Source: Mobula hypostoma (taxonomy: Eukaryota). From it: a DNA stretch of 64,000 nucleotides. Positions 2,818 through 60,279 of the stretch are shown here, piece by piece. The position numbers were made by a program, and so were the translations under genes. Below the pieces are notes generated by a model. That model made no database searches. It saw nothing but the letters and a program-made list of their open reading frames with translations, and was not told where the DNA came from. The stretch lies in contig NC_086126.1 of the NCBI RefSeq assembly GCF_963921235.1, forward strand, positions 12,338,001 through 12,402,000, read 5' to 3'. Position 1 is the stretch's first letter; the number at the start of each line of letters is the position of its first letter.

Positions 2818-3044
2818 GGTCATCTGCACGGTCTACAGCTGATTCCCTGCGGGTGGGGGGGGGGGGGAGAGAGAGAGAGAGAGAACTGGAGCCAGTAGAG
2901 ATTCCCCGCCGGTTCACCGGCAGATTGATGAAAACTCCCTCTCTCCCGCTGACCAGCGTCGCATACTTCGATCACCTAGGCAAGTAGAGGACTCCTGTGG
3001 AAGGGACAGTCCGGGATATCAAGCGCAGTCTTCTTGCAGGTGGG
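2818..3044 (-). pseudogene. Cystatin family B remnant B0 (3' part of exon 2 at 2976-3044; internally deleted exon 3 at about 2818-2846)
   Basis: Minus strand encodes PTCKKTALDIPDCPFHRSPLLA* followed by a GT donor; exon 3 reduced to GISCR...VQM. Confidence 0.75.
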
Positions 3045-6611: not shown

Positions 6612-6814
6612 ATGGGCCAGTTCTGGTGGTGTTGGTGTTGATGTTGGGGGCGGCGGATGTGGGGGCGACCTCCATGCCCGGCGGCCTCTGCCCCGTGCCC
6701 ACAGATGACCCCGGCGTGCTGAAAGCGATCCGGGTGGCCGAGGAGGACTTCAACCACAAATCCAGCGACTTGTTTCACACCGCGGTGTCGAATGTGATAT
6801 CGGCCCAAAAACAG

Positions 6815-9240: not shown

Positions 9241-10788
9241 GCTTTTGCATTCTGAGTCTGCCTGTGTTTGCAATGTTAACAGGGTAACTCGGTGAACGAG
9301 GTCGACCCAGCACTGACCACCACGGACTATAGTGCGCTCAGCGATCGTGGTTAGACCCAGCATCTCGATAGGAGCGACGGGTCTCAGTCAGTGGTGTAAT
9401 TTCAAATGTGGCAGGTGGGTGTGAGACCAGACGACTCGGCCTCAGAATAGAGGGCCGTCCTTTTAGGAGGGAGAGCAGTAATTTCTTCAGCCAGAGAGTG
9501 GTGAATCTGTGGAATTCGTTGCCACAGGCAAGCCTTTGAGTACGTTTAAGACAGAGATTGATAGATTCTCGACTGATCAGGGTATGGAGTAACACGGGGA
9601 GAAGGCAGGAGATTGGGGGCTGAGAGGGAAAATGGTGAAATGGCGGAGCAGATTCGACGGGCCAAATGGCCTAATTCTGCCTTTTTATCTCACGGCCTTA
9701 TAAAGTATATTCATCACGGAAAATGTACCGTTTCACGTTCTAATCAGGAACACTCTCCAGAGCATCAACGTCCTTCCTCTCGTGGGGAGGCCAGAACTAT
9801 ACGCGATACTCCAGATCTGAGTTTTATGAAGTCTGTCAATCTAACCCGGCGAAGATTTTTGTCACAGTCAGACATGAAAGTGTTCATTACCTTAACGTCG
9901 ACAATGTCTCCAACCACGGTCCTAATGCCCTTTACCTCCCCAACCCAACCCGTCACCCACGACTCAGTTCTTGCCAAAATCCATTTCATCCTGTCACTTC
10001 GCTTCCCGATCTGAACTTACCGTCGGCTGCACTCAGTCACAAACCACCGGGCCCCATCAGGCTCATAATCAGCGGCGACGATATCCAGACCACACTGAGG
10101 TTTCTTCCCCTAAGGGAAAAGACGCATTCTTTCCTCTGCCCCCGGCCCACCTGGCTTCACCCGTCGCCTTTGATCTTATCCTCATTCCCACGACATGTTT
10201 TTATATTCTGGCCCCTTCCCTTCCTCTCCAGCCCTGATGAAGGGTCTCGGCCTGAAACGGCGGCTGTTTATTCCTTTCCATAGATGCTGGGTTCCTTCAC
10301 CATTTTGCGTGTCGATTAGTGAGGGGTTTAGGGAGAAGGAGTCGGGTGCAGGATGGAAGGGAGTTTGGGGAGGAAAGGGGGAAGAGATGGGAGGGAGGGG
10401 CGAGCGCTGTGGGGAGGAGAGTCGGATAGGAGTGAAGGAGAAGAAGAGTCGGGGAGCCGGAGGATTGTTGGAGTGTGTGGAGACGTTGAAGGAGGGGGAG
10501 CGGTGCTCCCACAGCAGAGCTCCTGTGCAGGGGAGGTGGGGCCGGGGTGGTGGAGGTTGAACAGCAGAGAGGAGGTGACGGGTGGCCACTCGCCGTATCC
10601 TCCCGGCCCGATACATACACACCCTTTTACAGAGCTTTGGAGGGGTTTTCCTGACCAGTCTTGTATCAGGAGCCCAGACTGTGGTCCTTCCCCATCGAGC
10701 CCGAGCACTGGCTGTGCCAGCACGGTCCTGAGGCCCGGATCGTGCCAGTCGGTACCATTCCCCAGTGGCCCGGTGTAGGAAGAAGACA

Positions 10789-10941
10789 TGCAAGAAGACT
10801 GCGCTTGATATCCCGGACTGTCCCCTATACGGGAGTCCTCTATATGCCAAGGTATTCGAATTGTGCGACGCTGGTCAGCGGTTAGAGATGGAGGTTTCAT
10901 GAATCTGCCGGGGTACCGGCGGGGAACCTCGACTAGGTCCA

Positions 10942-10972
<31 letters not shown>

Positions 10973-11068
10973 GCACAGAGAATCAGCTGTAGATTTAAAG
11001 TCCGGGACCGCCCGAGGCTCGGGCCGGTGCAGATGATTGAAGAGCAGTGCGTCAGGGTAGCGAAGTGA
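10789..11068 (+). pseudogene. Cystatin B1 (exon 2 3' remnant 10789-10851; exon 3 10979-11068)
   Basis: CKKTALDIPDCPLYGSPLYAK|gt, then ag|RISCRFKVRDRPRLGPVQMIEEQCVRVAK*; exon 3 is 90 bp as in family A; 5' half of exon 2 deleted. Confidence 0.8.
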
Positions 11069-11255
11069 CCGGACTGTAGGACCCCTGCGGTGCACACAGC
11101 TCTGCTGAAGCAATACTCCCGACCGCTGGTCAAACGGATACTAACACAGCACTTTACCTGTGTGTGTGTGTGCGTGTGTGTGTATACACTCTATCACTAA
11201 CATACATTCCCCGGGGACCTTCTCTCTTTCTTTCTCTCACACACACCAAGTTTGA

Positions 11256-18551: not shown

Positions 18552-20729
18552 ATGGGTCCGGTTCTGGTGGTGTTGGTGTTGATGTTGGGGGCAGCGGTGG
18601 TGGTGACGCCCTGCATGCCGGGCGGCCTCTGCCCGGTGCCCAAAGATGACCCCGGGGTGGTGAACGCGATCCGGGTAGCGGAGGAGGACTTCAACCGCAA
18701 ATCTAAAGACTTCTTTTACAGCGCTGTGTCGAATGTGATATCGGCCCAGACACAGGTGATGGGGAGGGAAATAGGAGGAAGGGGAGTGGAGGGGGGAAGG
18801 GTTAGGGGAGGGAGGAGGGGTGGGACGGTGGGGCGGGGAGGAGAAGGGGAGAGTGAGGAGGGGGAGCCAGGGAAGAGGGAAGGGGAGGGGAGGAGAGATG
18901 GGGAAGGCGGAGATGGGGAGGAAGGGTAGATGGAGCAGGGGGAAGGGGAGGAGAGGGAGAGGGGTGGGGGAGAGAGGCAGGAGGAATGGGAAGTGGGGAG
19001 AAGGGGGAGGGGAGCTGGGGAGCAGAGGGAGATGGGGAGCGAGTGGGGGCAAGTGCGGAATAGATGGTGTGGGCAGAGGAGGGGAAGTGCGGAGGAGAGG
19101 GGGAAGGGGAAGGGTGGGAGGAGGTGTCGGGGTGGTGAGGATGGGGAGCAGAGATGGAGGGGATAAAAGGGGTAGGGGAAAGGGAAGGAGGGGAGGTGAG
19201 TGAGGAGGAAGATAGTGAGGCGGAGAGAGAGAAGCAGAGGGAGGGAGAGTGGGAGGAGGAGTGGTAGCGGGGGAAGATCCGGTGTAGGGGGAAGGGACGG
19301 GCAAAAGCAGGGGAGAGTGGGTAGAAGGGGTTCAGGGAGAGGGCGAGGAAGGATACGGAGAATCTACACAGAGATATGTATAGGTTAAGTCTGTAGGCAA
19401 ATGTCTGTCAGATGGAGTACAATGTTGGTAAACACGAGGTCATCCACTTGGGAAGGGGAAAAGGAAGAGCAGATTATTATTTAAATGGTAAAAGATTGCA
19501 GCATGCTGATGTGACTGGGGACTCGGGAGTGCTTGTGCATGAATCACGAAAGGTTGGTTTGCATGTACAGCGGGCTATCAAGCAGGCAAATGGGAGGTTA
19601 GCCTTCATTGCTAGAGGGATTGAATTCAAGAGCAGGGAGGTTATGCTGCAACTGTACTGGGTACTGGTGAGGCTGCACCTGGAGTACTGCGTGCAGTTCT
19701 GGTCTGCTTGCTTCAGGAAGGATATACTGGCTTTGGAGGTTCACCATGTTGAGACTAGAGAGGAGGGTGTGAGACTATAAGCAGAGATTGAATCGCCTGG
19801 GACTGTACTTGCAGGAATTCAGAAAAATGAGAAGAAATCTTAGAGAAAAATACAATTATGAAAGAGATAGAGGCAGGAAAGTTGTTTCCACTGGTAGGTG
19901 AGACTAGAACTAGGGGACGTAGCCTCAAGATTCGGGGGAGTAGATTTAAGACAGAGATGAGGAGGAACTGCTTTTCCCAGGGAGTGGTGAATCTGTGGAA
20001 TTCTCTGTCCAATGAAGCAATAGAGACTACGTCAGTAAATATACTTAAGACAAGGTTGGATAGATTTTTACATAGTAGGGGAATTAAGGGTTGGGGGGAA
20101 AAGGCAGGTAGGTGGAGATGAGTCCATGGTCAGATCAGTCATGATCTTATTAAATGGCGGAGCAGGCTCGACGGGCCAGATGGCCGACTCCTGCTCTTAT
20201 TTCTTATGACCAGCAGAGTAAAGGTGGTGGGTGTGTGGATATGGGTGACCACTCCTGGCTCGATACACACCGACACCCTGTAGAAATGTTTTGAGGCCTT
20301 TCTGACTGTAAGGTGCTTTTGCAGGTGGTGTTTGTGCTCATGTATCATCTTACCCTGGAGCTGAGAACCACCGTCTGCAAGAAGAGTTCTGTTTCCCGGA
20401 ACTGTCCCTTCCACGAGGATCCTCAGTATGCCAAGGTGAGCGATCAGAGCACTGGTGGTCTCGGGAGAGAGGGGCGGGGGTCCTGTCCCCAGAGACACTG
20501 GAACGTGGTGGGGATTTATCAATCGGCCGGTGTACCGGCGGGAAACTCTTTTAATACTGGCCTCTGCTTTTCCCCGCAGACAATGAACTGTAGATTTATG
20601 GTCTGGGACCAAACGGTGCTCGCTCCCATGCACGTGACTGACTTTTCTTGCTCCAGGACGGCCAAGCGACCGGTCTGTAGGACCCCGGCGGCACACAGCG
20701 TGGCGCGCACCGCTCAGCTGAAGCAATAA
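18552..20729 (+). CDS. Cystatin A2, divergent type-2 cystatin, 154 aa; exons 18552-18755, 20325-20435, 20580-20729
   Basis: Open frame with hydrophobic signal peptide and GT-AG introns. Motifs altered: QVVFV replaces QxVxG and DQTV replaces xxPW. TGA>CGA adds 20 aa. Confidence 0.85.
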
Positions 20730-22754
20730 TTCTGATGACCAGGTCAAATGGATACGAATACAGCACTTTACCACGCCCGGGTCGCCTCGTAATGCAATCT
20801 CCACAACGCACACACAAAAACGCGCGTGTGTACACACTCGCTCACTAATATACATTCCCCGGGCTACTATCCCTCTCTCTCTCATAAGCCATTCACCCCC
20901 GGGGAGAAACAGAGCATTTTGTCCTAGTTCCCCTCACTTAAGGTCGCCTGTGGGAATTCAGAGTTCTGGCGCAAACTCGAAGAAATGGTTGAAATTCACC
21001 AGATGCACCCTAAAGATATACACGTGTTAGTGAAAGCGAAGTGCCCGAGGAAACTGCGGGACAGGATGTCCCGTGGGGTGCAAGTAGTATCTGGATTTCA
21101 ACTCACGGGCTGACCGCTTATTAACATAATTGTATAATTAAGCTGCAAATGTATGTTTTTATGCTTGTGCAATAAAGCTTTTGCATTCTGAGTCTGCCTG
21201 TGTTTGCAATGTTAACAAGGAAACTCGGTGAATTAGGTCAACCCAGCACTGACCACCACGGACTATAGTGCGCTCAGCGATCGTGGTTACACCCAGCATC
21301 TCGATTGGAGCGACGGGTCTCAGTCAATGGTGTAATTTCAAATGTGGCGGGTGGGTGTGAGACCAGAGGACTCGGCATCAGAATACAGGGCCGTCCTTTT
21401 AGGAGGGAGAGCAGTAATTTCTTCAGCCGGAGAGTGGTGAATCTGTGGAATTCGTTGCCACAGGCAAGCCTTTAAGTACGAGAGACAGAGATTGCCTTTA
21501 AGACAGAGATTGATAGATTCTCGAATGGTCAGGGTATGAAGTAACACGGGGAGAAGGCAGGAGATTGAGGGCTGGGAGGGAAAATGATGAAATGGCGGAG
21601 CACATTCGACGGGCCAAATGGCCTAATTCTGCCTTTATATCTCACGGCCTTATAAAGTGTATTCATCACGGAAAATGTACCGTTTCACGATCTAATCAGG
21701 AACACTCTCCAGAGCCTCAACGTCCTTCCTCTCGTGGGGAGTCCAGAACTATCCGCAATACTCCATATCTGAGTTTTATGAAGTCTGTCAATCTAACCGG
21801 GTGACGATTTTTGTCACAGTCAGACATGAAAGTGTTCATTACCTTAACGTCGATAATATCTTCAGCCCCGGTCCTAATGCCCTTCACCTCCTCATCCCAA
21901 ACCGTTACCCACGACTCACTTCTTGCCAAAATCCATTTCATCCTGTCACTTCGCTTCCCGATCTGAACTTACTGTCGGCTGCACTCAGTCACAAACCACC
22001 GGGCCCCGTCAGGCTCGTCAGCGGCGACGATATCCCGACCACACTGCGGTTTCATCCCCGAAGGGAAAAGACGCATTCTTTCCTCTGTCCCCGGCCCACC
22101 TGGCTTCACCTGTCGCCTTTGATCTTATCCTCATTCCCACGACATTCTTTTTATATTCTGGACCCTTCCCTTCCTCTCCAGCCCTGATGAAGTGTCTCGG
22201 CCCGAAACGACGGCTGTTTATTCCTTTCGATAGATGCTGGGTTCCTTCACCATTTTGCGTGTCGATTAGTGAGCGGATTAGTGAGAAGGGGTCGGGTGGA
22301 AGATGGAAGGGAGTTTGGGGAGGAAGGGGGGAAGAGATGGGAGGGAAGGGCGAGCGCTGTGGAGAGGAGGGACGGGTAGGAGTGAAGGAGAGGACGAGTC
22401 GGGGAGCCGGAGGATTGTTGGAGTGTGTGGAGATGTTGAAGGAGGGGGAGCGGTGCTCCCACAGCAGAGCTCCTGTGCAGGGGAGGTGGGGCCGGGGTGG
22501 TGGAGGTTGAACAGCAGAGAGGAGGTGATGGGTGGCCACTCGCCGTGCCCTCCAGCCGGATACATGCGCACCCTTTTATAGAGGTTTGGAGGGGTTTTCC
22601 TCACCAGACTTGTATCAGGAGCCCAGACTGTGGTCCTTCCCCATCGAGCCCAGGCACTGGCTGTGCCGGCACGGCCCTGAAGCCTGGAGCCTGCCACTCG
22701 CCACCATTCCCCAGTGGCCCGGTGTAGGATGTTTACGGTAGGGTGCTCTTCCAT

Positions 22755-23074
22755 GTTGTGGAGCGGATAATTTACCGTGTGTCCCGGGAGCTGAGGACCC
22801 CCACCTGCAAGAAGACTGCGCTTGACTTCCCGGACTGTCCCTTCCACAGGAGTCCACATATGCCAAGGTGATCGAACTGTGCGCTGGTGGTCTCGGGAGA
22901 GAGGGAGGTTTCATTAATCTGTCGGGCTACCGGCGGGGAAACTCTACTGGCTCCAGTTTTTTTTCTCTCTCTCTCTCTGCACAGAGATTCAGCTGTAGAT
23001 TTAAAGTCTGGGACCGCCCGTGGCTCGGGGCCGTGCAGATGATTGAAGAGCAGTGCGTCAGGGTGACAAAGTGA
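22755..23074 (+). pseudogene. Cystatin B2 (exon 2 22755-22867; exon 3 22985-23074)
   Basis: Exon 3 RFSCRFKVWDRPWLGAVQMIEEQCVRVTK* keeps PW; exon 2 acceptor AG>AT and a 1-bp deletion. Confidence 0.8.
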
Positions 23075-23163
23075 CCGGACTGTAGGACCTCTGCGGTGCA
23101 CACAACTCTGCTGAAGCAATACTCCTGTCCCCAGGTCAAACGGATACTAACATAGCACTTTAC

Positions 23164-34824: not shown

Positions 34825-36918
34825 CCGGTCTGTAGGACCCCGGCGGCACACAGCGTGGCTCGCACCGCTCAGCTAAAGCAATAATTCTGATCACCAGGTC
34901 AAATGGATACGAATACAGCACTTTACCACGGCCCGGGGCGCCTCGTAATGCAATCTCTACAACGCATACAGACAAACGTGCATGTTTATACCCTCGCTCG
35001 CTAATTTACATTCCCCGGGCTAATATCCGTCTCTCTGTCATAAGCCATTCACCCCCGGGGAGAAACACAGCATTTTGTCCGAGTTCCCCTCACTTAAGGT
35101 CGCCTGTGGGAATTCAGAGTTCTGTCGCAAACTCGAGGAAATGGTTGAAATTCACCAGATGCACCCTAAAGATATATACGTGTTAGTGAAAGCGAAGTGC
35201 CCGAGGAAGCTGCGGGACAGGATGTCCCGTGGGGTGCAAGTAGTATCTGGGTTTCAACTCACGGACTGACGGCTTATTAACATAATTGTATAATTTAGCT
35301 GCAAATGTATGTTTTTATTCTTGCGCAATAAAGCTTTTGCATTCTGAGTCTGCCTGTGTTTGCAATGTTAACAGGGTAACTCGGTGAATTAGGTCGACCC
35401 AGCACTGACCACCACGGACTATAGTGAGCTCAGCGATCGTGGTTAGACCCAGCATCTCGATAGGAGCGACGGGTCTTAGTCAGCGGTGTAATTTCAAATG
35501 TGGCGGGTGGGTGTGAGACCAGAGGACTCGGCCACAAATAGATGGCCGTCCTTTTTGGAGGGAGAGCAGTAATTTCTTCAGCCAGAGAGTAGTGAATCTG
35601 TGGAATTCGTTGCCACAGGCAAGCCTTTAAGTACGTTTAAGACAGAGATTGATAGATTCTCGACTGGTCAGGGTATGAAGTAACACGGGGAGAAGGCAGG
35701 AGATTGAGGGCTGGGAGAGAAAATGATGAAATGGCGGAGGAGATTCGACGGGCCAAATGGCCTAAATTCTGCCTTTATATCTCACGGCCTTATAAAGTGT
35801 ATTGATCATGAAAAATGTACCGTTTCAGGTTCTAATCAGGAACACTCTCCAGAGCCTCAATGTCCTTCCTCTAGTGGGGAAACCAGAACTATCCGCAATA
35901 CTCCAGATCTGAGTTTTATGAAGTCTGTCACTCTCACCGGGTGAAGACTTTTCTCACATTCAGACATGAAAGTGTTCATTAACTTAACGTCGACAAAATC
36001 TCCAACCCCGGTCCTACTCCCCTTCACCTCCTCATCCCAACCCGTTACCCACGACTCAGTTCTTGCCAAAATCCATTTCATCCTGTCACTTCGCTTCCCG
36101 ATCTGAACTTACCGTCGGCTGCACTCAGTCACAAACCACCGGCCCCCATCAGGCTCGTTGTCAGCGGCGACGATATCCAGACCACACTGCGGTTTCTTCC
36201 CCGAAGGGAAAAGACGCATTCTTTCCTCTGCCCCCGGCCCACCTGGCTTCACCCGTCGCCTTTCATCTTATCCTCATTCCCACGACATGTTTTTATATTC
36301 TGGCCCCTTCCCTTCCTCTCCAGCCCTGATGAAGGGTCTCGGCCCGACACGACGTCTGTTTATTCCTTTCCATAGATGCTGGGTTCCTTCACCATTTTGC
36401 GTGTATATTAGTGAGGGGTTTAGGGAGAAAGGGTCGGGTGGAAGATGGAAGGGAGTTTGGGGATGAAGTGGGGAAGAGATGGGAGGGAAAGCTGAGCGCT
36501 GTCGAGAGGAGAGTCGGGTAGGAGTGAAGGAGAGGACGAGTCGGGGAGCCGAAGGATTGTTGGAGTGTATGGAGATGTTGAAGGAGGGGGAGCGGTGCTC
36601 CCACAGAAGAGCTCCTGTGCAGGGGAGGTGGGGCGGGAGTGGTGGAGGTTGAACAGCAGGGAAGAAGTGGTGGGTGGCCACTCGCCGTACCCTCCCGGTC
36701 GGATACAGGCACCCCCTTTTACAGAGCTTTAGAGGGGTTTTCCTCACCAGACTTGTATCAGGAGCCCAGACTGCCGTCCTTCCCTATCGAGCCCGGGCAC
36801 TGGCTGTGCCAGCACGGCCCTGAGGCCTGGAGCGTGGCAGTCGGTACCATTCCCCAGTAGCCCGATGTAGGATGTTTTCATCTTACCCCGCGCCTCTGAC
36901 GGTAGGGTGCTCTTCCAG

Positions 36919-37235
36919 GGTGTAGAGCGGATAATTTACCGTGTTTCCCGGGAGCTGAGGACCCCCACCTGCAAGAAGACTGCGCTTGATATCCCGGACG
37001 TTCCCTTCCACAGGAGTCCTCTATATGCCAAGGTGATCGAACTGTGCGACGCTGGTCAGCGGGAGAGAGGGTGGTTTCATGAATCTGCCGGGGTACCGGC
37101 GAGGAAACTCTACTGGCTCCAGTTCTTTTTCTCTCTCACTCTCCGCTGAGAATCAGCTGTGGATTTAAAGTCTGGGACCGCACGTGGCTCGGGCCGGTGC
37201 AGGTGATTGAAGAGCAGTGCGTCAGGGTGGCAAAG
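36919..37235 (+). pseudogene. Cystatin B3 (exon 2 36919-37032; exon 3 37149-37235)
   Basis: GVERIIYRVSRELRTPTCKKTALDIPDVPFHRSPLYAK (one Cys lost); exon 3 acceptor mutated and stop lost. Confidence 0.8.
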
Positions 37236-37339
37236 TTCCGGACTCTAGGACCGCTGCGGTGCACACAGCTCTGCTGAAGCAATACCCCAGACTCCAGGTC
37301 AAACGGATACTAACACAGCACATTCTGCGCGTGCGCGTG

Positions 37340-51835: not shown

Positions 51836-51967
51836 ATGGGGCCGGTACTGGTGGTATTGGTGTTGATGCTGGGGGCGGCGGAGGTGGTGACGCCCTGCAT
51901 GCCGGGCGACCTCTGCCCCGTGCCCATGCACGTGACTGAATCTTCTTGCTCCAGGACGGCCAAGTGA
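51836..51967 (+). pseudogene. Cystatin A4: in-frame exon 1-exon 3 fusion, 43-aa intronless ORF
   Basis: MGPVLVVLVLMLGAAEVVTPCMPGDLCPVP|MHVTESSCSRTAK*; junction at a shared CCCA; promoter block and 3' UTR retained. Confidence 0.85.
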
Positions 51968-54058
51968 CCGGTCTGTAGGAACCCGGCAACACACAGCATG
52001 GCGTGCGCCGTTCAGCTAAATCAATAATTTTGATGACCAGGTCAAATGGATACGAATACAGCACTTTACCACGCCCGGGTCGCCTCGTAATGCAATCTCC
52101 ACAACGCACACACAAAAACGCGCGTGTGTACACACTCGCTCACTAATATACATTCCCCGGGCTACTATCCCTCTCTCTCTCATAAGCCATTCACCCCCGG
52201 GGAGAAACACAGCATTTTGTCCGAGTTCCCCTCACTTAAGGTCGCCCGTGGGAATTCAGAATTCTGGCGCAAACTCGAGGAAATGGTTGAAATTCACCAG
52301 ATGCACCCTAAAGATATACACGTGTTAGTGAAAGCGAAGTGACGAGGAAGGTGCGGGACAGGATGTCCCAGGGGGCGCAAGTAGTATCTGGGTTTCTACT
52401 CACGAGCTGACCGCTTATTAGCATAATTGTATAATTTAGCTGCAAATGTATGTTTTTATGCTTGCGCAATAAAGCTTTTGCATTCTGAGTCTGCCTGTGT
52501 TTGCAATGTTAACAGCGTAACTCGGTGAATTAGGTCGACCCAGCACCGATCACCATGGACTATAGTGCGCTCAGCGATCGTGGTTACACCCAGCATCTCG
52601 ATTGGAGCGACGGGTCTCAGTCAGTGGTGTAATTTCAAATGTGGCAGGTGGGTGTGAGACCAGAGGACTCGGCCTCAGAATAGAGGGCCGTCCTTTTAGG
52701 AGGGAGAGCAGTAATTTCTTCAGCCAGACAGTGGTGAATCTGTGGAATTCGTTGCCACAGGCAAGCCTTTGAGTACGTTTAAGACAGAGATTGATAGATT
52801 CTCGACTGATCAGGGTATGAAGTAACACGGGGAGATGGCAGGAGATTGGGAGCTGAGAGGGAAAATGGTGAAATGGCGGAGCAGATTCGACGGGCCAAAT
52901 GGCCTAATTCTGCCTTTATATCTCACGGCCTTATAAAGTGTATTCATCATGCAAAATATAAAGTTTCACGCTCTAATCAGGAACATTCTCCAGAGCATCA
53001 ACGTCCTTCCTCTGGTGGGGAGACGAGCACTATACGCAATACTCCAGATCTGAGTTTTATGAAGTCAGTCAATCTCACCGGGCGAAGATTTTCGTCAGTC
53101 AGACGTGAAAGTGTGCATTGCCTTAACGTCGACAAAATCTCCAACCCCGGTCCTAATGCCCTTCACCTCTTCATCCCAAACCGTTACCCACGACTCAGTT
53201 CTTGCCAAAATCCATTTCATCCTGTCACTTCGCTTCCCGATCTGAACTTACCGTCGACTGCACTCAGTCACAAACCATCGACTCCCGTCAGGCTCGTCGC
53301 CAGCGGCGACGATATCCAGAACACAATGCGGTTTCATCCCCGAAGGGAAAAGATGCATTTTTTCCTCTGCCCCCGGCCCACCTGACTTCACCTGTCACGT
53401 TTGATCTTATCCTCATTCCCACATCATGTTTTTATATTCTGCCATCTTCCCCTTCCTCTCCAGCCCTGATGAAGGCTCTCGGCCCAAAACGGCGGCTGTT
53501 TATTCCTTTCCATAGATGCTGGGTTCCTTCACCATTTTGTGTGTCTATTAGTGAGGGATTTAGGGAGAAGGAGTCGGGTGGAAGATGGAAGGGAGTTTGG
53601 GGAGGAAGGGGGCGAGAGATGGGAGGGAAGGGCGAGCGCTGTCGAGAGGAGGGTCGGGTAGGAGTGAAGGAGAGGACGAGCCCGGGAGCCGGAGGATTGT
53701 TGGAGTGTGTGGAGACGTTGAAGGAGGGGGAGCGGTGCTCCCACAGCAGAGCTCCTGTGCAGGGGAGGTGGGGCCGGGGTGGTGGAGGTTGAACAGCAGA
53801 GAGGAGGTGATGGGTGGCGACCTGCCGTACCCTCCCGGCCGGATACATGCGCACCCTTTTACAGAGCTTTCGAGGGGTTTTCCTCACCAGACTTGTATCA
53901 GGAGCCCAGACTGTGGTCCTTCCCCATCGAGCCCGGGCACTGGCTGTGCCGGCACGGCCCCGAAGCCTGGAGCCTGCCACTCGGCACCATTTCCCACTGC
54001 CCCGGTGTAGGATGTTTTCATCATTCCCCGCCCCTCTGACGGTAAGGTGCTCTTCCAG

Positions 54059-54172
54059 GGTGTGGTGGGGATAAATTACCGTCTGTCCCGGGAGCTGAGG
54101 ACCCCCACCTGCAAGAAGACTGCGCATGATATCCCGGACTGTCCCTTCCACAGGAGTCCTCTATATGCCTAG
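54059..54172 (+). pseudogene. Cystatin B4 exon 2 (exon 3 deleted)
   Basis: ag|GVVGINYRLSRELRTPTCKKTAHDIPDCPFHRSPLYA*; keeps the xVxG-INY pattern; last codon AAG>TAG. Confidence 0.8.
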
Positions 54173-54439
54173 GTGATCGAGAAGCAATACTCCTGTCCCC
54201 AGGTCAAACGGATACTAACACAGCCCTTTACGGGTGTGTGTGTGTGTGTGTGTGTGTGTACGTACACTCTATAATTGCTCGTCATGGACATCGAGGGGCC
54301 AAGTAACCCGCTTCTGTGCTCGACCGCTGTACGTTCTACGTTCGGTACTATCTGTGTTTCAACTCAACGGCTCACCAGTTATTATCATAATTGTATAATT
54401 AAGCCGTAAATGTATGTGTGTGTGTATATATATATATGC

Positions 54440-57779: not shown

Positions 57780-59612
57780 GTGAGCGATCAGTGCACTGGT
57801 GGTCTCGGGAGTGAGGGGCGGGGACACTGGAACCTGGTGGGGATTCACCAGATGCACCCTAAAGATATTCACGTGTTACTGAAAGCGAAGTGCCCGAGGA
57901 AGGTGCGGGACAGGATGTCCCGTGGGGTGCAAATAGTATCTGGGTTTCAACTCCCGGGCTGATTGCTTATTAACATAATTGTAGAATTAAACTGCAAATG
58001 TATGTTTTTATGCTTGCGCAATAAAGCTTTTGCATTCTGAGTCTGCCTGTGTTTGCAATGTTAACAGGGTGACTCGGTGAATGAGGTCGACCCAGCACTG
58101 ACCACCAGAGACTATAGTGCGCTCAGCGATCGTGGTTACACCCAGCATCTCGATAGCAGCGACGAGTCTCAGTCAGTGGTGCAATTTCAAATGTGGCGGG
58201 TGTGTATGAGACCAGAGGACTCGGCCTCAGAATAGAGGGCCGTCCTGTTAGGAGGGAGAGCAGTAATTTCTTCAGACAGAGAGTGGTGAATCTGTAGAAT
58301 TCGTTGCCACAGGCAAGCCTTTGAGTACGTTTAAGACAGAGATTGATAGATTCTCGACTGCTCAGGGTATGAAGTAATACGGGGAGAAGGCAGGAGATTG
58401 AGGGTTGGGAGAGAAAATGATGAAATGGCGGAGGAGATTCGACGGGCCAAATGGCCTAATTCTTCCTTTATATCTCACGGCCTTATGAAGTGTACTCATC
58501 ACGGAAAATGTACCGTTTCACGTTCTAATCAGGAACACTCTCCAGAACCTCAATGTCCTTCCTCTCGTGGGGCGATCAGAACTATCCGCAACACTCCAGA
58601 TCTGAGTTTTATGAAGTCTGTCACTCTAACCGGGTGAAGACTTTTGTCACAGTCAGACATGAAAGTGCTCAGTACCTTAACGTCGACAAAATCTCCAACC
58701 CCGGTCCTACTCCCCTTCACCTCCTCATCCCAACCCGTTACCCACGACTCAGTTCTTGCCAAATTCCATTTCATCCTGTCACTTCGCTTCCCGATCTGAA
58801 CTTACCGTCGGCTGCACTCAGTCACAAACCATCGACTCCCGTCGGGCTCGTCGTCAGCGGCGACGATATCCAGACCACACTGCGGTTTCATCCCCGAAGG
58901 GAAAAGTTGCATTCTTTCCTCTGTCCCCGGCCCACCTGGCTTCACCAGTCGCGTTTGAACTTATCCTCATTCCCACATCATGTTTTTACATGCTGCCATC
59001 TTCCCCTTCTTCTCCAGCCCTGATGAAGGCTCTCGGCCCGAAACGGCGGCTGTTTATTCCTTTCCATAGATGCTGGGTTCCTTCACCATTTTGTGTGTCT
59101 ATTAGTGAGGGGTTTAGGGAGAAGCGGTCGGGTGGAAGATGGAAGGGAGTTTGGGGAGGAAGGTGGGGAGAGATGGGAGGGAAGGGCGAGCGCTGTGGAG
59201 AGGAGGGTCGGGTAGGAGTGAAGGAGAGGACGAGTCCGGGAGCCGGAGGATTGTTGGAGTGTGTGGAGACGTTGAAGGAGGGGGAGCGGTGCTCCCACAG
59301 CAGAGCTCCTGTGCAGGGGAGGTGGGGCCGGGGTGGTGGAGGTTGAACAGCAGAGAGGAGGTGATGGGTGGCGACCTGCCGTACCCTCCCGGCCGGATAC
59401 ATGCGCACCCTTTTACAGAGCTTTCGAGGGGTTTTCCTCACCAGACTTGTATCAGGAGCCCAGACTGTGGTCCTTCCCCATCGAGCCCGGGCACTGGCTG
59501 TGCCGGCACGGCCCTGAAGCCTGGAGCCTGCCACTCGGCACCATTCCCCAGTGGCCCGGTGTAGGATGTTTTCATCATTCCACGCCCCTCTGACGGTAGG
59601 GTGCTCTTCCAG

Positions 59613-59913
59613 GGTGTGGAGCGGATAATTTACCGTGTGTCCCGGGACCTGAGGATCCCCACCTGCAAGAAGACTGCGCTTGATATCCCGGACTGTCCCT
59701 TCCACAGGAATCCTCTATATGCCTGGTCAGCGAGAGACAGGGAGATTTCATTAATCTGCCGGGGTACCGGTGGGGAATCTCTACTGGCTCCAATTTTTTC
59801 ATTCTCTCTCTCTCTCTCCGCAGAGAATCATCTGTAGATTTCAAGTCTGGGACCGCCCGTGTCTCGGGAGCGTGCAGATGATTGATGAGCAGCGCATCAG
59901 GGTGGCAAAGTGA
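59613..59913 (+). pseudogene. Cystatin B5 (exon 2 59613-59723 with donor deleted; exon 3 59824-59913)
   Basis: GVERIIYRVSRDLRIPTCKKTALDIPDCPFHRNPLYA; RIICRFQVWDRPCLGSVQMIDEQRIRVAK*. Confidence 0.8.
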
Positions 59914-60279
59914 CCGGACTGTAGGACCCCTGCGGTGCACACAGCTCTGCTGAAGCAACACTCCTGTCCCCAGGTCAAACGGATACTAACACGGCAATTT
60001 ACCTGTGTGTGTGTGTGTGTGTATACGTACACTCTCTCACTAACATGCATTCCCCGGGCCACTATCTCTCTTCCTCTTTCTCACACACACCAAGTTTGAG
60101 TTGGAACTCCTGTATAATCGCTCGTCATGGACATCGAGGGGCCAAGTAACCCGCTTCTGTGCTCGACCGCTGTACGTTCTACGTTCGGTACTATCTGTGT
60201 TTCAACTCAACGGCTCACCAGTTATTATCATAATTGTATAATTAAGCCGTAAATGTATGTGTGTGTGTATATATATATG

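Follow-up and report, generated by a model that had tools for sequence, protein, structure and literature searches.

A devil-ray cystatin gene with altered protease-contact loops in a tandem array of Mobula hypostoma

What becomes of a secreted protease inhibitor when both of the loops that contact the protease have lost the family consensus while the rest of the gene is preserved? The question is raised by A2, a three-exon type-2 cystatin gene at positions 18552-20729 of the forward strand in a stretch of 64,000 nucleotides (the window) of the lesser devil ray Mobula hypostoma (RefSeq assembly GCF_963921235.1, contig NC_086126.1, 12,338,001 to 12,402,000). A2 belongs to a tandem array of cystatin copies, named here A1 to A5 and B1 to B5. 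An original prediction, made from the letters of the DNA, had proposed that the two loops were rewritten in A2 and that the clustering of changes there pointed to neofunctionalisation rather than to decay. The reading adopted here, with moderate confidence, is that A2, still intact, belongs to a subfamily of secreted type-2 cystatins that is specific to devil rays and diversified at the reactive edge, and that it has an altered set of targets and a C-terminal tail that is incidental.

In the first protease-binding loop (L1), A2 reads Q68-V-V-F71-V72, where A1 has QVVSG and A3 has QVVAG, and the QxVxG motif is thus absent. In the second loop (L2) it reads Q116-T-V-L-A-P-M-H123 against HPWIGPTQ in A1 and QPWVGPTQ in A3, with Thr117-Val118 in the place of Pro-Trp. 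The fifth L1 column is Gly in 436 of 445 aligned homologous domains and Val in A2; the fourth is mostly Ala or Ser, and its eight commonest residues include no aromatic one. The Trp column of L2 is occupied by Trp in 279 of 301 aligned domains and by Val118 in A2. Both loops could be aligned in 267 domains, drawn from the 150 best representative homologues of a 1.84-billion-protein library, with A2 and A3 added as reference rows. In 252 of these the Gly of L1 and the Trp of L2 are both kept, Trp alone is missing in 12 and Gly alone in one, and both are absent only from A2 and from one degenerate domain. The cleft that holds papain's active site is filled by a wedge formed by the N-terminus, QXVXG, and PW (PMC2784779), and the W106F replacement alone lowers the affinity of cystatin C for cathepsins 10-100-fold (PMC8167853).

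A third contact site also departs from the family, since A2 has S51-K52-D53 (window 18702-18710) in the loop that corresponds to the legumain site. In cystatins C, E/M, and F the centre of this site is an Asn of the loop that follows the helix, and Asn is the commonest residue in the aligned column (200 domains). Outgroup ray paralogues carry Asn, as SND; canonical A copies have Ser, and A2 has Lys. Judged by these residues, legumain inhibition was probably lost across the whole A family and not in A2 alone.

The rest of the gene is well preserved. Its model was verified base by base, and the frame, splice sites, and scaffold cysteines that had been described as intact were all confirmed, as were the sequences quoted at that time (QVVFV, QTVLAPMH, C86/C95/C109/C129, and CGA at codon 135). 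The coding sequence of 465 nucleotides specifies 154 residues and a TAA stop, and both introns are of the GT..AG type and in phase 0. Exon 1 (18552..18755, forward strand, as are all parts of A2) holds the start codon, a hydrophobic N-terminus (MGPVLVVLVLMLGAAVVV), signal-like as judged by inspection, Cys21 and Cys27 around Gly24-Gly25, the helix, S51-K52-D53, and Q68, which is the first residue of L1. Exon 2 (20325..20435) opens with V69-V70-F71-V72 (20325-20336), the remodelled tip of L1, and includes Cys86 and Cys95. After intron 2 (20436..20579), the ancestral coding part of exon 3, T106-K134 (20580..20666), carries Cys109 and Cys129, with L2 at 20610-20633. This exon has a good acceptor and a polyadenylation signal downstream, the sole AATAAA (21171-21176) of the presumed 3' untranslated region (UTR; 20730..21195). 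Intron 1 (18756..20324) includes, between 18760 and 20200, about 600 nucleotides of purine-rich, GGGAGG-like low-complexity sequence and a reverse-transcriptase fragment of a long interspersed nuclear element (LINE); both are common to A1, A2, and A3 and are therefore older than the duplications.

The predicted product matches Pfam PF00031 with an E-value of 1.4e-14 and 54.6 bits, against a cut-off of 22.2, and when the family alignment, headed by A2, was turned into a profile, it matched chicken egg-white cystatin at 7.8e-26 and cystatin C also at about 1e-25. An AlphaFold2 model of A2, built with 16 relatives, shows the cystatin fold, a helix on a five-strand antiparallel sheet, with a mean predicted local distance difference test score (pLDDT) of 71 and core blocks of about 64-90; L1 forms the turn after strand 54-71 and L2 the turn at 117-122. 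A Foldseek search with this model returned cystatin C first and placed chicken cystatin, mouse CRES, and cystatin E/M in the top ten, at a probability of 1.00. The four scaffold cysteines (C86, C95, C109, and C129) align with the cysteine columns of the family, so that two C-terminal disulfides are predicted by alignment, and G24-G25 align with the nearly invariant N-terminal Gly column. A2 is accordingly a type-2 cystatin (Pfam PF00031, MEROPS I25B) by the scaffold tests, and departs from the family at both loop motifs and at the legumain site. An additional cysteine pair, C21/C27 (window 18612-18632), brackets the conserved N-terminal Pro-Gly-Gly in A2, A3, and the related proteins P0001, P0003, P0005, P0009, and P0018, while A1 has Ser at the first position of the pair; these two cysteines may be bonded to each other and so close a small loop on the N-terminal segment that takes part in binding.

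The altered loops are not private to A2. P0001 (XP_062892491), whose gene lies elsewhere on this 21.9 Mb record of M. hypostoma, combines QVVWV with VWDHTALAPMH and has a normal stop after TAK. P0003 (XP_072101748), from M. birostris, has loops identical to those of P0001 (QVVWV, HTALAPMH). A second M. birostris protein, P0018 (XP_072101682), reads QVVFVLMYHL; its exons 1-2 differ from those of A2 at six of 105 residues and its L1 is identical. The A2-type was defined by Q-V-V-[FW]-V in L1 together with T-[VA]-L-A-P-M-H in L2, a combination found in A2, P0001, and P0003, with the L1 state present also in P0018. A second homologue search, seeded on the P0001 loops, recovered no A2-type loops outside M. 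hypostoma and M. birostris. The proposal that the loops were rewritten in A2 itself was thus not borne out, and they belong instead to an older A2-type lineage; private to A2 are only V118, D126, F127, and the tail.

Seven residue states are exclusive to the A2-type: F/W71 and V72 in L1, and T117, V/A118, L119, A120, and H123 in L2. All seven fall within the 14 loop positions chosen a priori among 116 positions (hypergeometric p = 7e-8). In the protein tree, the A family, made up of A2 and its Mobula paralogues, has a support of 98/95, and within it the four sequences of the A2-type group together (95/94, with the loop columns included) as sister to the canonical A clade (97/94). Between the species the loops are unchanged, both of them in P0001 and P0003 and L1 in A2 and P0018. 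The putative cross-species pairs, assumed to be orthologous, differ at 4.6-6.0% of residues in the A2-type as compared with 11-17% in canonical copies. The variable loop residues, F/W, V/A, and Q/H, differ between the A2 and the P0001 branches, and the same sites were therefore hit repeatedly.

Rates of change agree with this localization. Of the 87 nucleotides in the ancestral coding part of exon 3, 18 (20.7%) distinguish A2 from A1/A3, an excess beyond chance, as divergence is 11% for intron 1, 6.9% for intron 2, 6% for the 3'UTR, and 4.8% for the tail segment; the enrichment over introns, whose absence would have told against the original prediction, was thus seen. The nonsynonymous rate (dN) of exon 3 is 0.27-0.29, its ratio to the synonymous rate (dN/dS) is 1.7-3.0, and two or three nucleotides have changed in each of codons 71, 112, 118, and 120. 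Together with the constancy of the loops between species, this pattern fits a burst of replacements at the contact edge that were then retained, and it does not fit simple decay. Of the earlier claim of neofunctionalisation, the clustering at functional loops and the functional divergence are supported, and the restriction of the change to A2 is not.

Part of what seemed new in A2 proved to be old. Polarity was assigned by comparing A2 with the B copies at the nucleotide level and with paralogues outside the array, including those of Hypanus sabinus, at the protein level. By this measure A2 keeps the ancestral states R49, K52, T67, L73, R110, D115, and M122, which were lost by canonical A1/A3, and W114 of VWD is common to the B copies and most outgroups. 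About one third of the changes originally listed are therefore ancestral states (CRF.VWD, PM, R, and the K52 and T67 of FNRKSKDFFYS..TQ). A rewriting specific to A2 of all 11 L2 residues and of the FNRKSKDFFYS segment was ruled out, since R110, W114, D115, M122, R49, K52, and T67 polarize as ancestral; in that segment, which had been described as changed in A2, R49 and K52 (and likewise T67) were retained by A2 and lost by A1/A3. For the match of CRF.VWD to family B, conversion or an ancestral state had been offered, and the ancestral reading is favoured, since these states are also found beyond the array, Hypanus included, although a short conversion tract from B is conceivable. That the novel loop residues were acquired by conversion from family B was ruled out, as none of them occurs in any B copy.

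The tail has a separate history. Codon 135 is CGA in A2 and TGA in A1, A3, A4, B1, B2, and B5, while B3 lost its stop by a one-nucleotide deletion; loss of the stop by CGA is found in A2 only. The change, confirmed as originally described, adds 20 residues (RPVCRTPAAHSVARTAQLKQ), including Cys138, the seventh cysteine, in a read-through segment at 20667..20729 (CGA at 20667-20669, TAA at 20727-20729). The 60 nucleotides turned into coding sequence are 3'UTR in A1, A3, and A4, and their divergence is at the UTR rate; the tail has a pLDDT of 40-48 in the AlphaFold2 model and is modelled as disordered. Neither this rate nor the model gave any sign of constraint or selection on the tail, which is a recent stop loss into the 3'UTR confined to A2, probably neutral or mildly harmful, and no part of the design of the subfamily. 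TGA>CGA (window 20664-20672) also gives the old C-terminus a dibasic pair, Lys134-Arg135, with Pro as the next residue.

Taken together, these data suggest that diversification of the edge that binds proteases gave rise to the A2-type within a tandem array evolving by birth and death. The scaffold was kept, with its putative signal peptide, the Gly-Gly near the N-terminus, the helix, the sheet of five strands, and the two predicted disulfides. At the L1 tip a small residue followed by Gly gave way to an aromatic one followed by Val (F/W-V), and in L2 Pro-Trp-(V/I)-Gly was replaced by Thr-(V/A)-Leu-Ala. As judged from sequence, tight canonical binding to papain-like cathepsins would be weakened or retargeted and legumain would not be inhibited, so that A2-type proteins may act on a different or narrower set of targets. 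The gain of Phe or Trp in L1 with the loss of Trp in L2 may keep a hydrophobic wedge in a new geometry.

Several observations weigh against this interpretation. When the loop columns were removed from the alignment, the A2-type sequences collapsed into a polytomy while the canonical clade remained (98/93), and a single origin of the A2-type is thus allowed, not proven. Over the whole gene, dN/dS is 0.64-0.74, with a ratio of replacement to silent changes of 27:7, close to neutral. From intron rates of indels and substitutions, it was roughly estimated that a frame of 134 codons would stay intact under neutrality with a probability of about 0.2, which makes intactness weak evidence. The stop loss and the odd seventh cysteine could be first lesions. 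The exact 154-residue product occurs in no public protein set, and the own exon 3 of A2 is skipped in the NCBI models. Finally, mapping of reads from four runs, which were probably of other species or of low coverage, yielded short contigs that fell on LINE repeats and on parts of exons conserved between paralogues, none of them assignable to A2. The same mapping gave no splice joints and a coverage of the A2 3'UTR that was zero in two of the four runs and in traces in the other two; searches of sequencing runs for A2 retrieved only runs containing 4-9% of its words, none of them on record as RNA.

Such observations lead to the first alternative, possible but doubtful in our view, that this copy is a young, unexpressed or decaying duplicate of a functional A2-type gene, with the stop loss as its first lesion. 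Most members of the array are indeed broken. The array consists of tandem units of 12-14 kb with about 90% nucleotide identity, each with an A gene followed by a B element made up of exon-2-like and exon-3-like pieces only; no B exon 1 was found within the 64-kb window. A1 lacks one base pair immediately downstream of its ATG (6612-6620; ATGGG-CCAG against ATGGGTCCGG) and is out of frame, so that A3 is the only intact canonical copy and no gene of the window other than A2 and A3 is intact. With the M. hypostoma RefSeq protein P0004 ("cystatin-2-like") the A3 model shares 100% identity. A1 matches P0006, an NCBI model that uses an upstream start and therefore lacks an N-terminal signal peptide. 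In A4 (51836-52024) a deletion of about 2 kb fuses the middle of exon 1 to the middle of exon 3, and the remaining residues (PGDLC, PMHVTESS) match the A2-type P0001, not A2; A5 is a fragment. The B pieces, located at 10777-11119, 22752-23125, 36916-37289, 54056-54235, and 59610-59964, and at about 2979-3038 on the minus strand, include degenerate copies: both Trp residues of B1 are replaced by Arg, B3 has lost its stop, B5 shows PW>PC and a scaffold Cys replaced by Arg, and exon 2 of B2 has lost its AG acceptor and frame.

Decay of A2 would also agree with features of the copy itself, namely the A2-only stop loss that adds an unpaired cysteine, the A2-only replacements D126 and F127 that sit in a strand, a terminal branch longer than that of the M. 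birostris counterpart, the scant 3'UTR coverage, and the absence of an NCBI model of the A2 open reading frame. Against it, the frame, all six splice signals, the start codon, polyadenylation signal, and four scaffold cysteines of A2 are all intact, exons 1-2 lie close to those of the M. birostris counterpart with an identical L1, and absent coverage in runs of such probable origin or depth proves nothing.

Within the reading of an intact and diversified inhibitor, a stronger version would hold that the A2-type is retargeted and not a dead inhibitor, its hydrophobic wedge residue having moved under positive selection from L2, where Trp was lost, to L1, where Trp or Phe was gained beside a Gly>Val tip, to engage a different set of proteases, such as enzymes of parasites or pathogens or those of another protease class. 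A B-type exon 3 downstream might in addition let one gene make products with either L2. We consider this version rather unlikely.

Another alternative concerns the product. In the NCBI model XP_062892279 (P0002), A2 exons 1-2 are joined to B2 exon 3, 2.4 kb downstream, and the own exon 3 of A2 is skipped; if this were the real product, it would combine the QVVFV L1 with a canonical PW L2, and exon 3 of A2 would be skipped or alternative. The M. birostris model XP_072101682 likewise places a B-type exon 3 after an A2-type exon 2, and continues through a further exon 2 and exon 3. Phases match in this arrangement, B2 exon 3 (22985..23074, forward strand) has an intact frame (RFSCRFKVWDRPWLGAVQMIEEQCVRVTK and a stop) with a strong polypyrimidine-AG acceptor, and the B units, having no exon 1 of their own, could be expressed only as downstream exons. 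The A/B joins of these two models would represent either read-through alternative splicing or automatic chimeras. Nevertheless, the M. birostris model looks like an automatic chimera across the array, homology-guided prediction would favour an exon containing PW, and the P0001 and P0003 models use the A2-type exon 3. The joined form is ranked as an improbable, minority possibility because exon 3 of A2 is reached first, with an acceptor as good as that of B2, and because the AATAAA at 21171 follows it and precedes B2.

Very improbable, finally, is a purely mutational and unselected origin of the loop patches, by gene conversion from a diverged paralogue or by a complex multi-nucleotide event followed by neutral carriage: the changes are tightly clustered, similarity is mosaic (the 5' flank of A2 is nearer to A1, at 6.2%, and exon 1 is nearer to A3, at 7.4%), and a 23-nucleotide stretch of exon 3 matches B at 21 of 23 positions, but no donor is known, since TVLA/TALA or F/W-V occurs outside the A2-type in no copy of the window and in no entry of the protein databases searched, the states shared with B also occur in out-of-array paralogues and in Hypanus and are therefore ancestral, L1 and L2 lie in different exons 240 nucleotides apart with an ordinary intron between them, and the codons that vary between the A2 and P0001 branches imply repeated hits.

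With A2 regarded as an intact member of a diversified subfamily, its nearest well-studied relatives are chicken egg-white cystatin and cystatin C (MEROPS I25B). These share with A2 two C-terminal disulfides (predicted in A2), a domain of about 115 residues, the fold, the N-terminal Gly, and a three-exon gene in which intron 1 falls directly after the Gln of QxVxG, and their signal peptide has a putative counterpart in the hydrophobic N-terminus of A2. A2 differs from them by the replacement of the L1 Gly by Val after an aromatic residue, of the L2 Pro-Trp by Thr-Val, and of the legumain-site Asn by Lys, as well as by the extra Cys21/Cys27 pair and the 20-residue tail with its seventh cysteine. 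The canonical A3 (P0004) resembles A2 in exon structure and in its N-terminal cysteine pair, and the two agree at about 90% of nucleotides over the unit and at 78% of residues in the protein; in contrast to A2, it retains QVVAG and PW, its reading frame ends with TAK and a TGA stop, and it has derived states of its own (SKSSDLFHT, KQ, K110, L114-E115, and T122).

Cystatins that lose the consensus contact motifs have repeatedly gained new roles, as in CRES, the fetuins, and the cathelicidins. The contact motifs are retained in cystatin F, which resembles A2 as a type-2 cystatin with additional cysteines. Cystatin F was solved as a dimer (2ch9); an intermolecular bond through Cys138 of A2 would be hypothetical. 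The CRES subgroup (cystatin 8 and others) resembles A2 in principle, being a secreted cystatin fold devoid of the consensus contact motifs, and some of its members have switched protease class, to prohormone convertase 2 (PMC2784779). A2 differs in its independent origin, nested in a ray-specific clade, and in keeping the N-terminal Gly and losing PW. Membership of A2 in CRES was ruled out, as A2 groups with Mobula paralogues whereas the CRES families are specific to Eutheria and descended from cystatin C (PMC2784779).

No paper on this array was found in the literature; a 2026 study of Spp2 uses the same genome and deals with another cystatin-fold family. Public gene models for the array are unreliable, as they include chimeric A/B models and leave the own exon 3 of A2 unannotated. 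The A2-type looks like an independent, young, and lineage-specific case, in cartilaginous fish, of a well-known phenomenon, and it brings no new principle. Its value lies in the arrangement of the locus, where the canonical parent A3, the variants A2 and P0001, and the broken copies stand side by side, making the steps by which the reactive edge was remodelled directly comparable.

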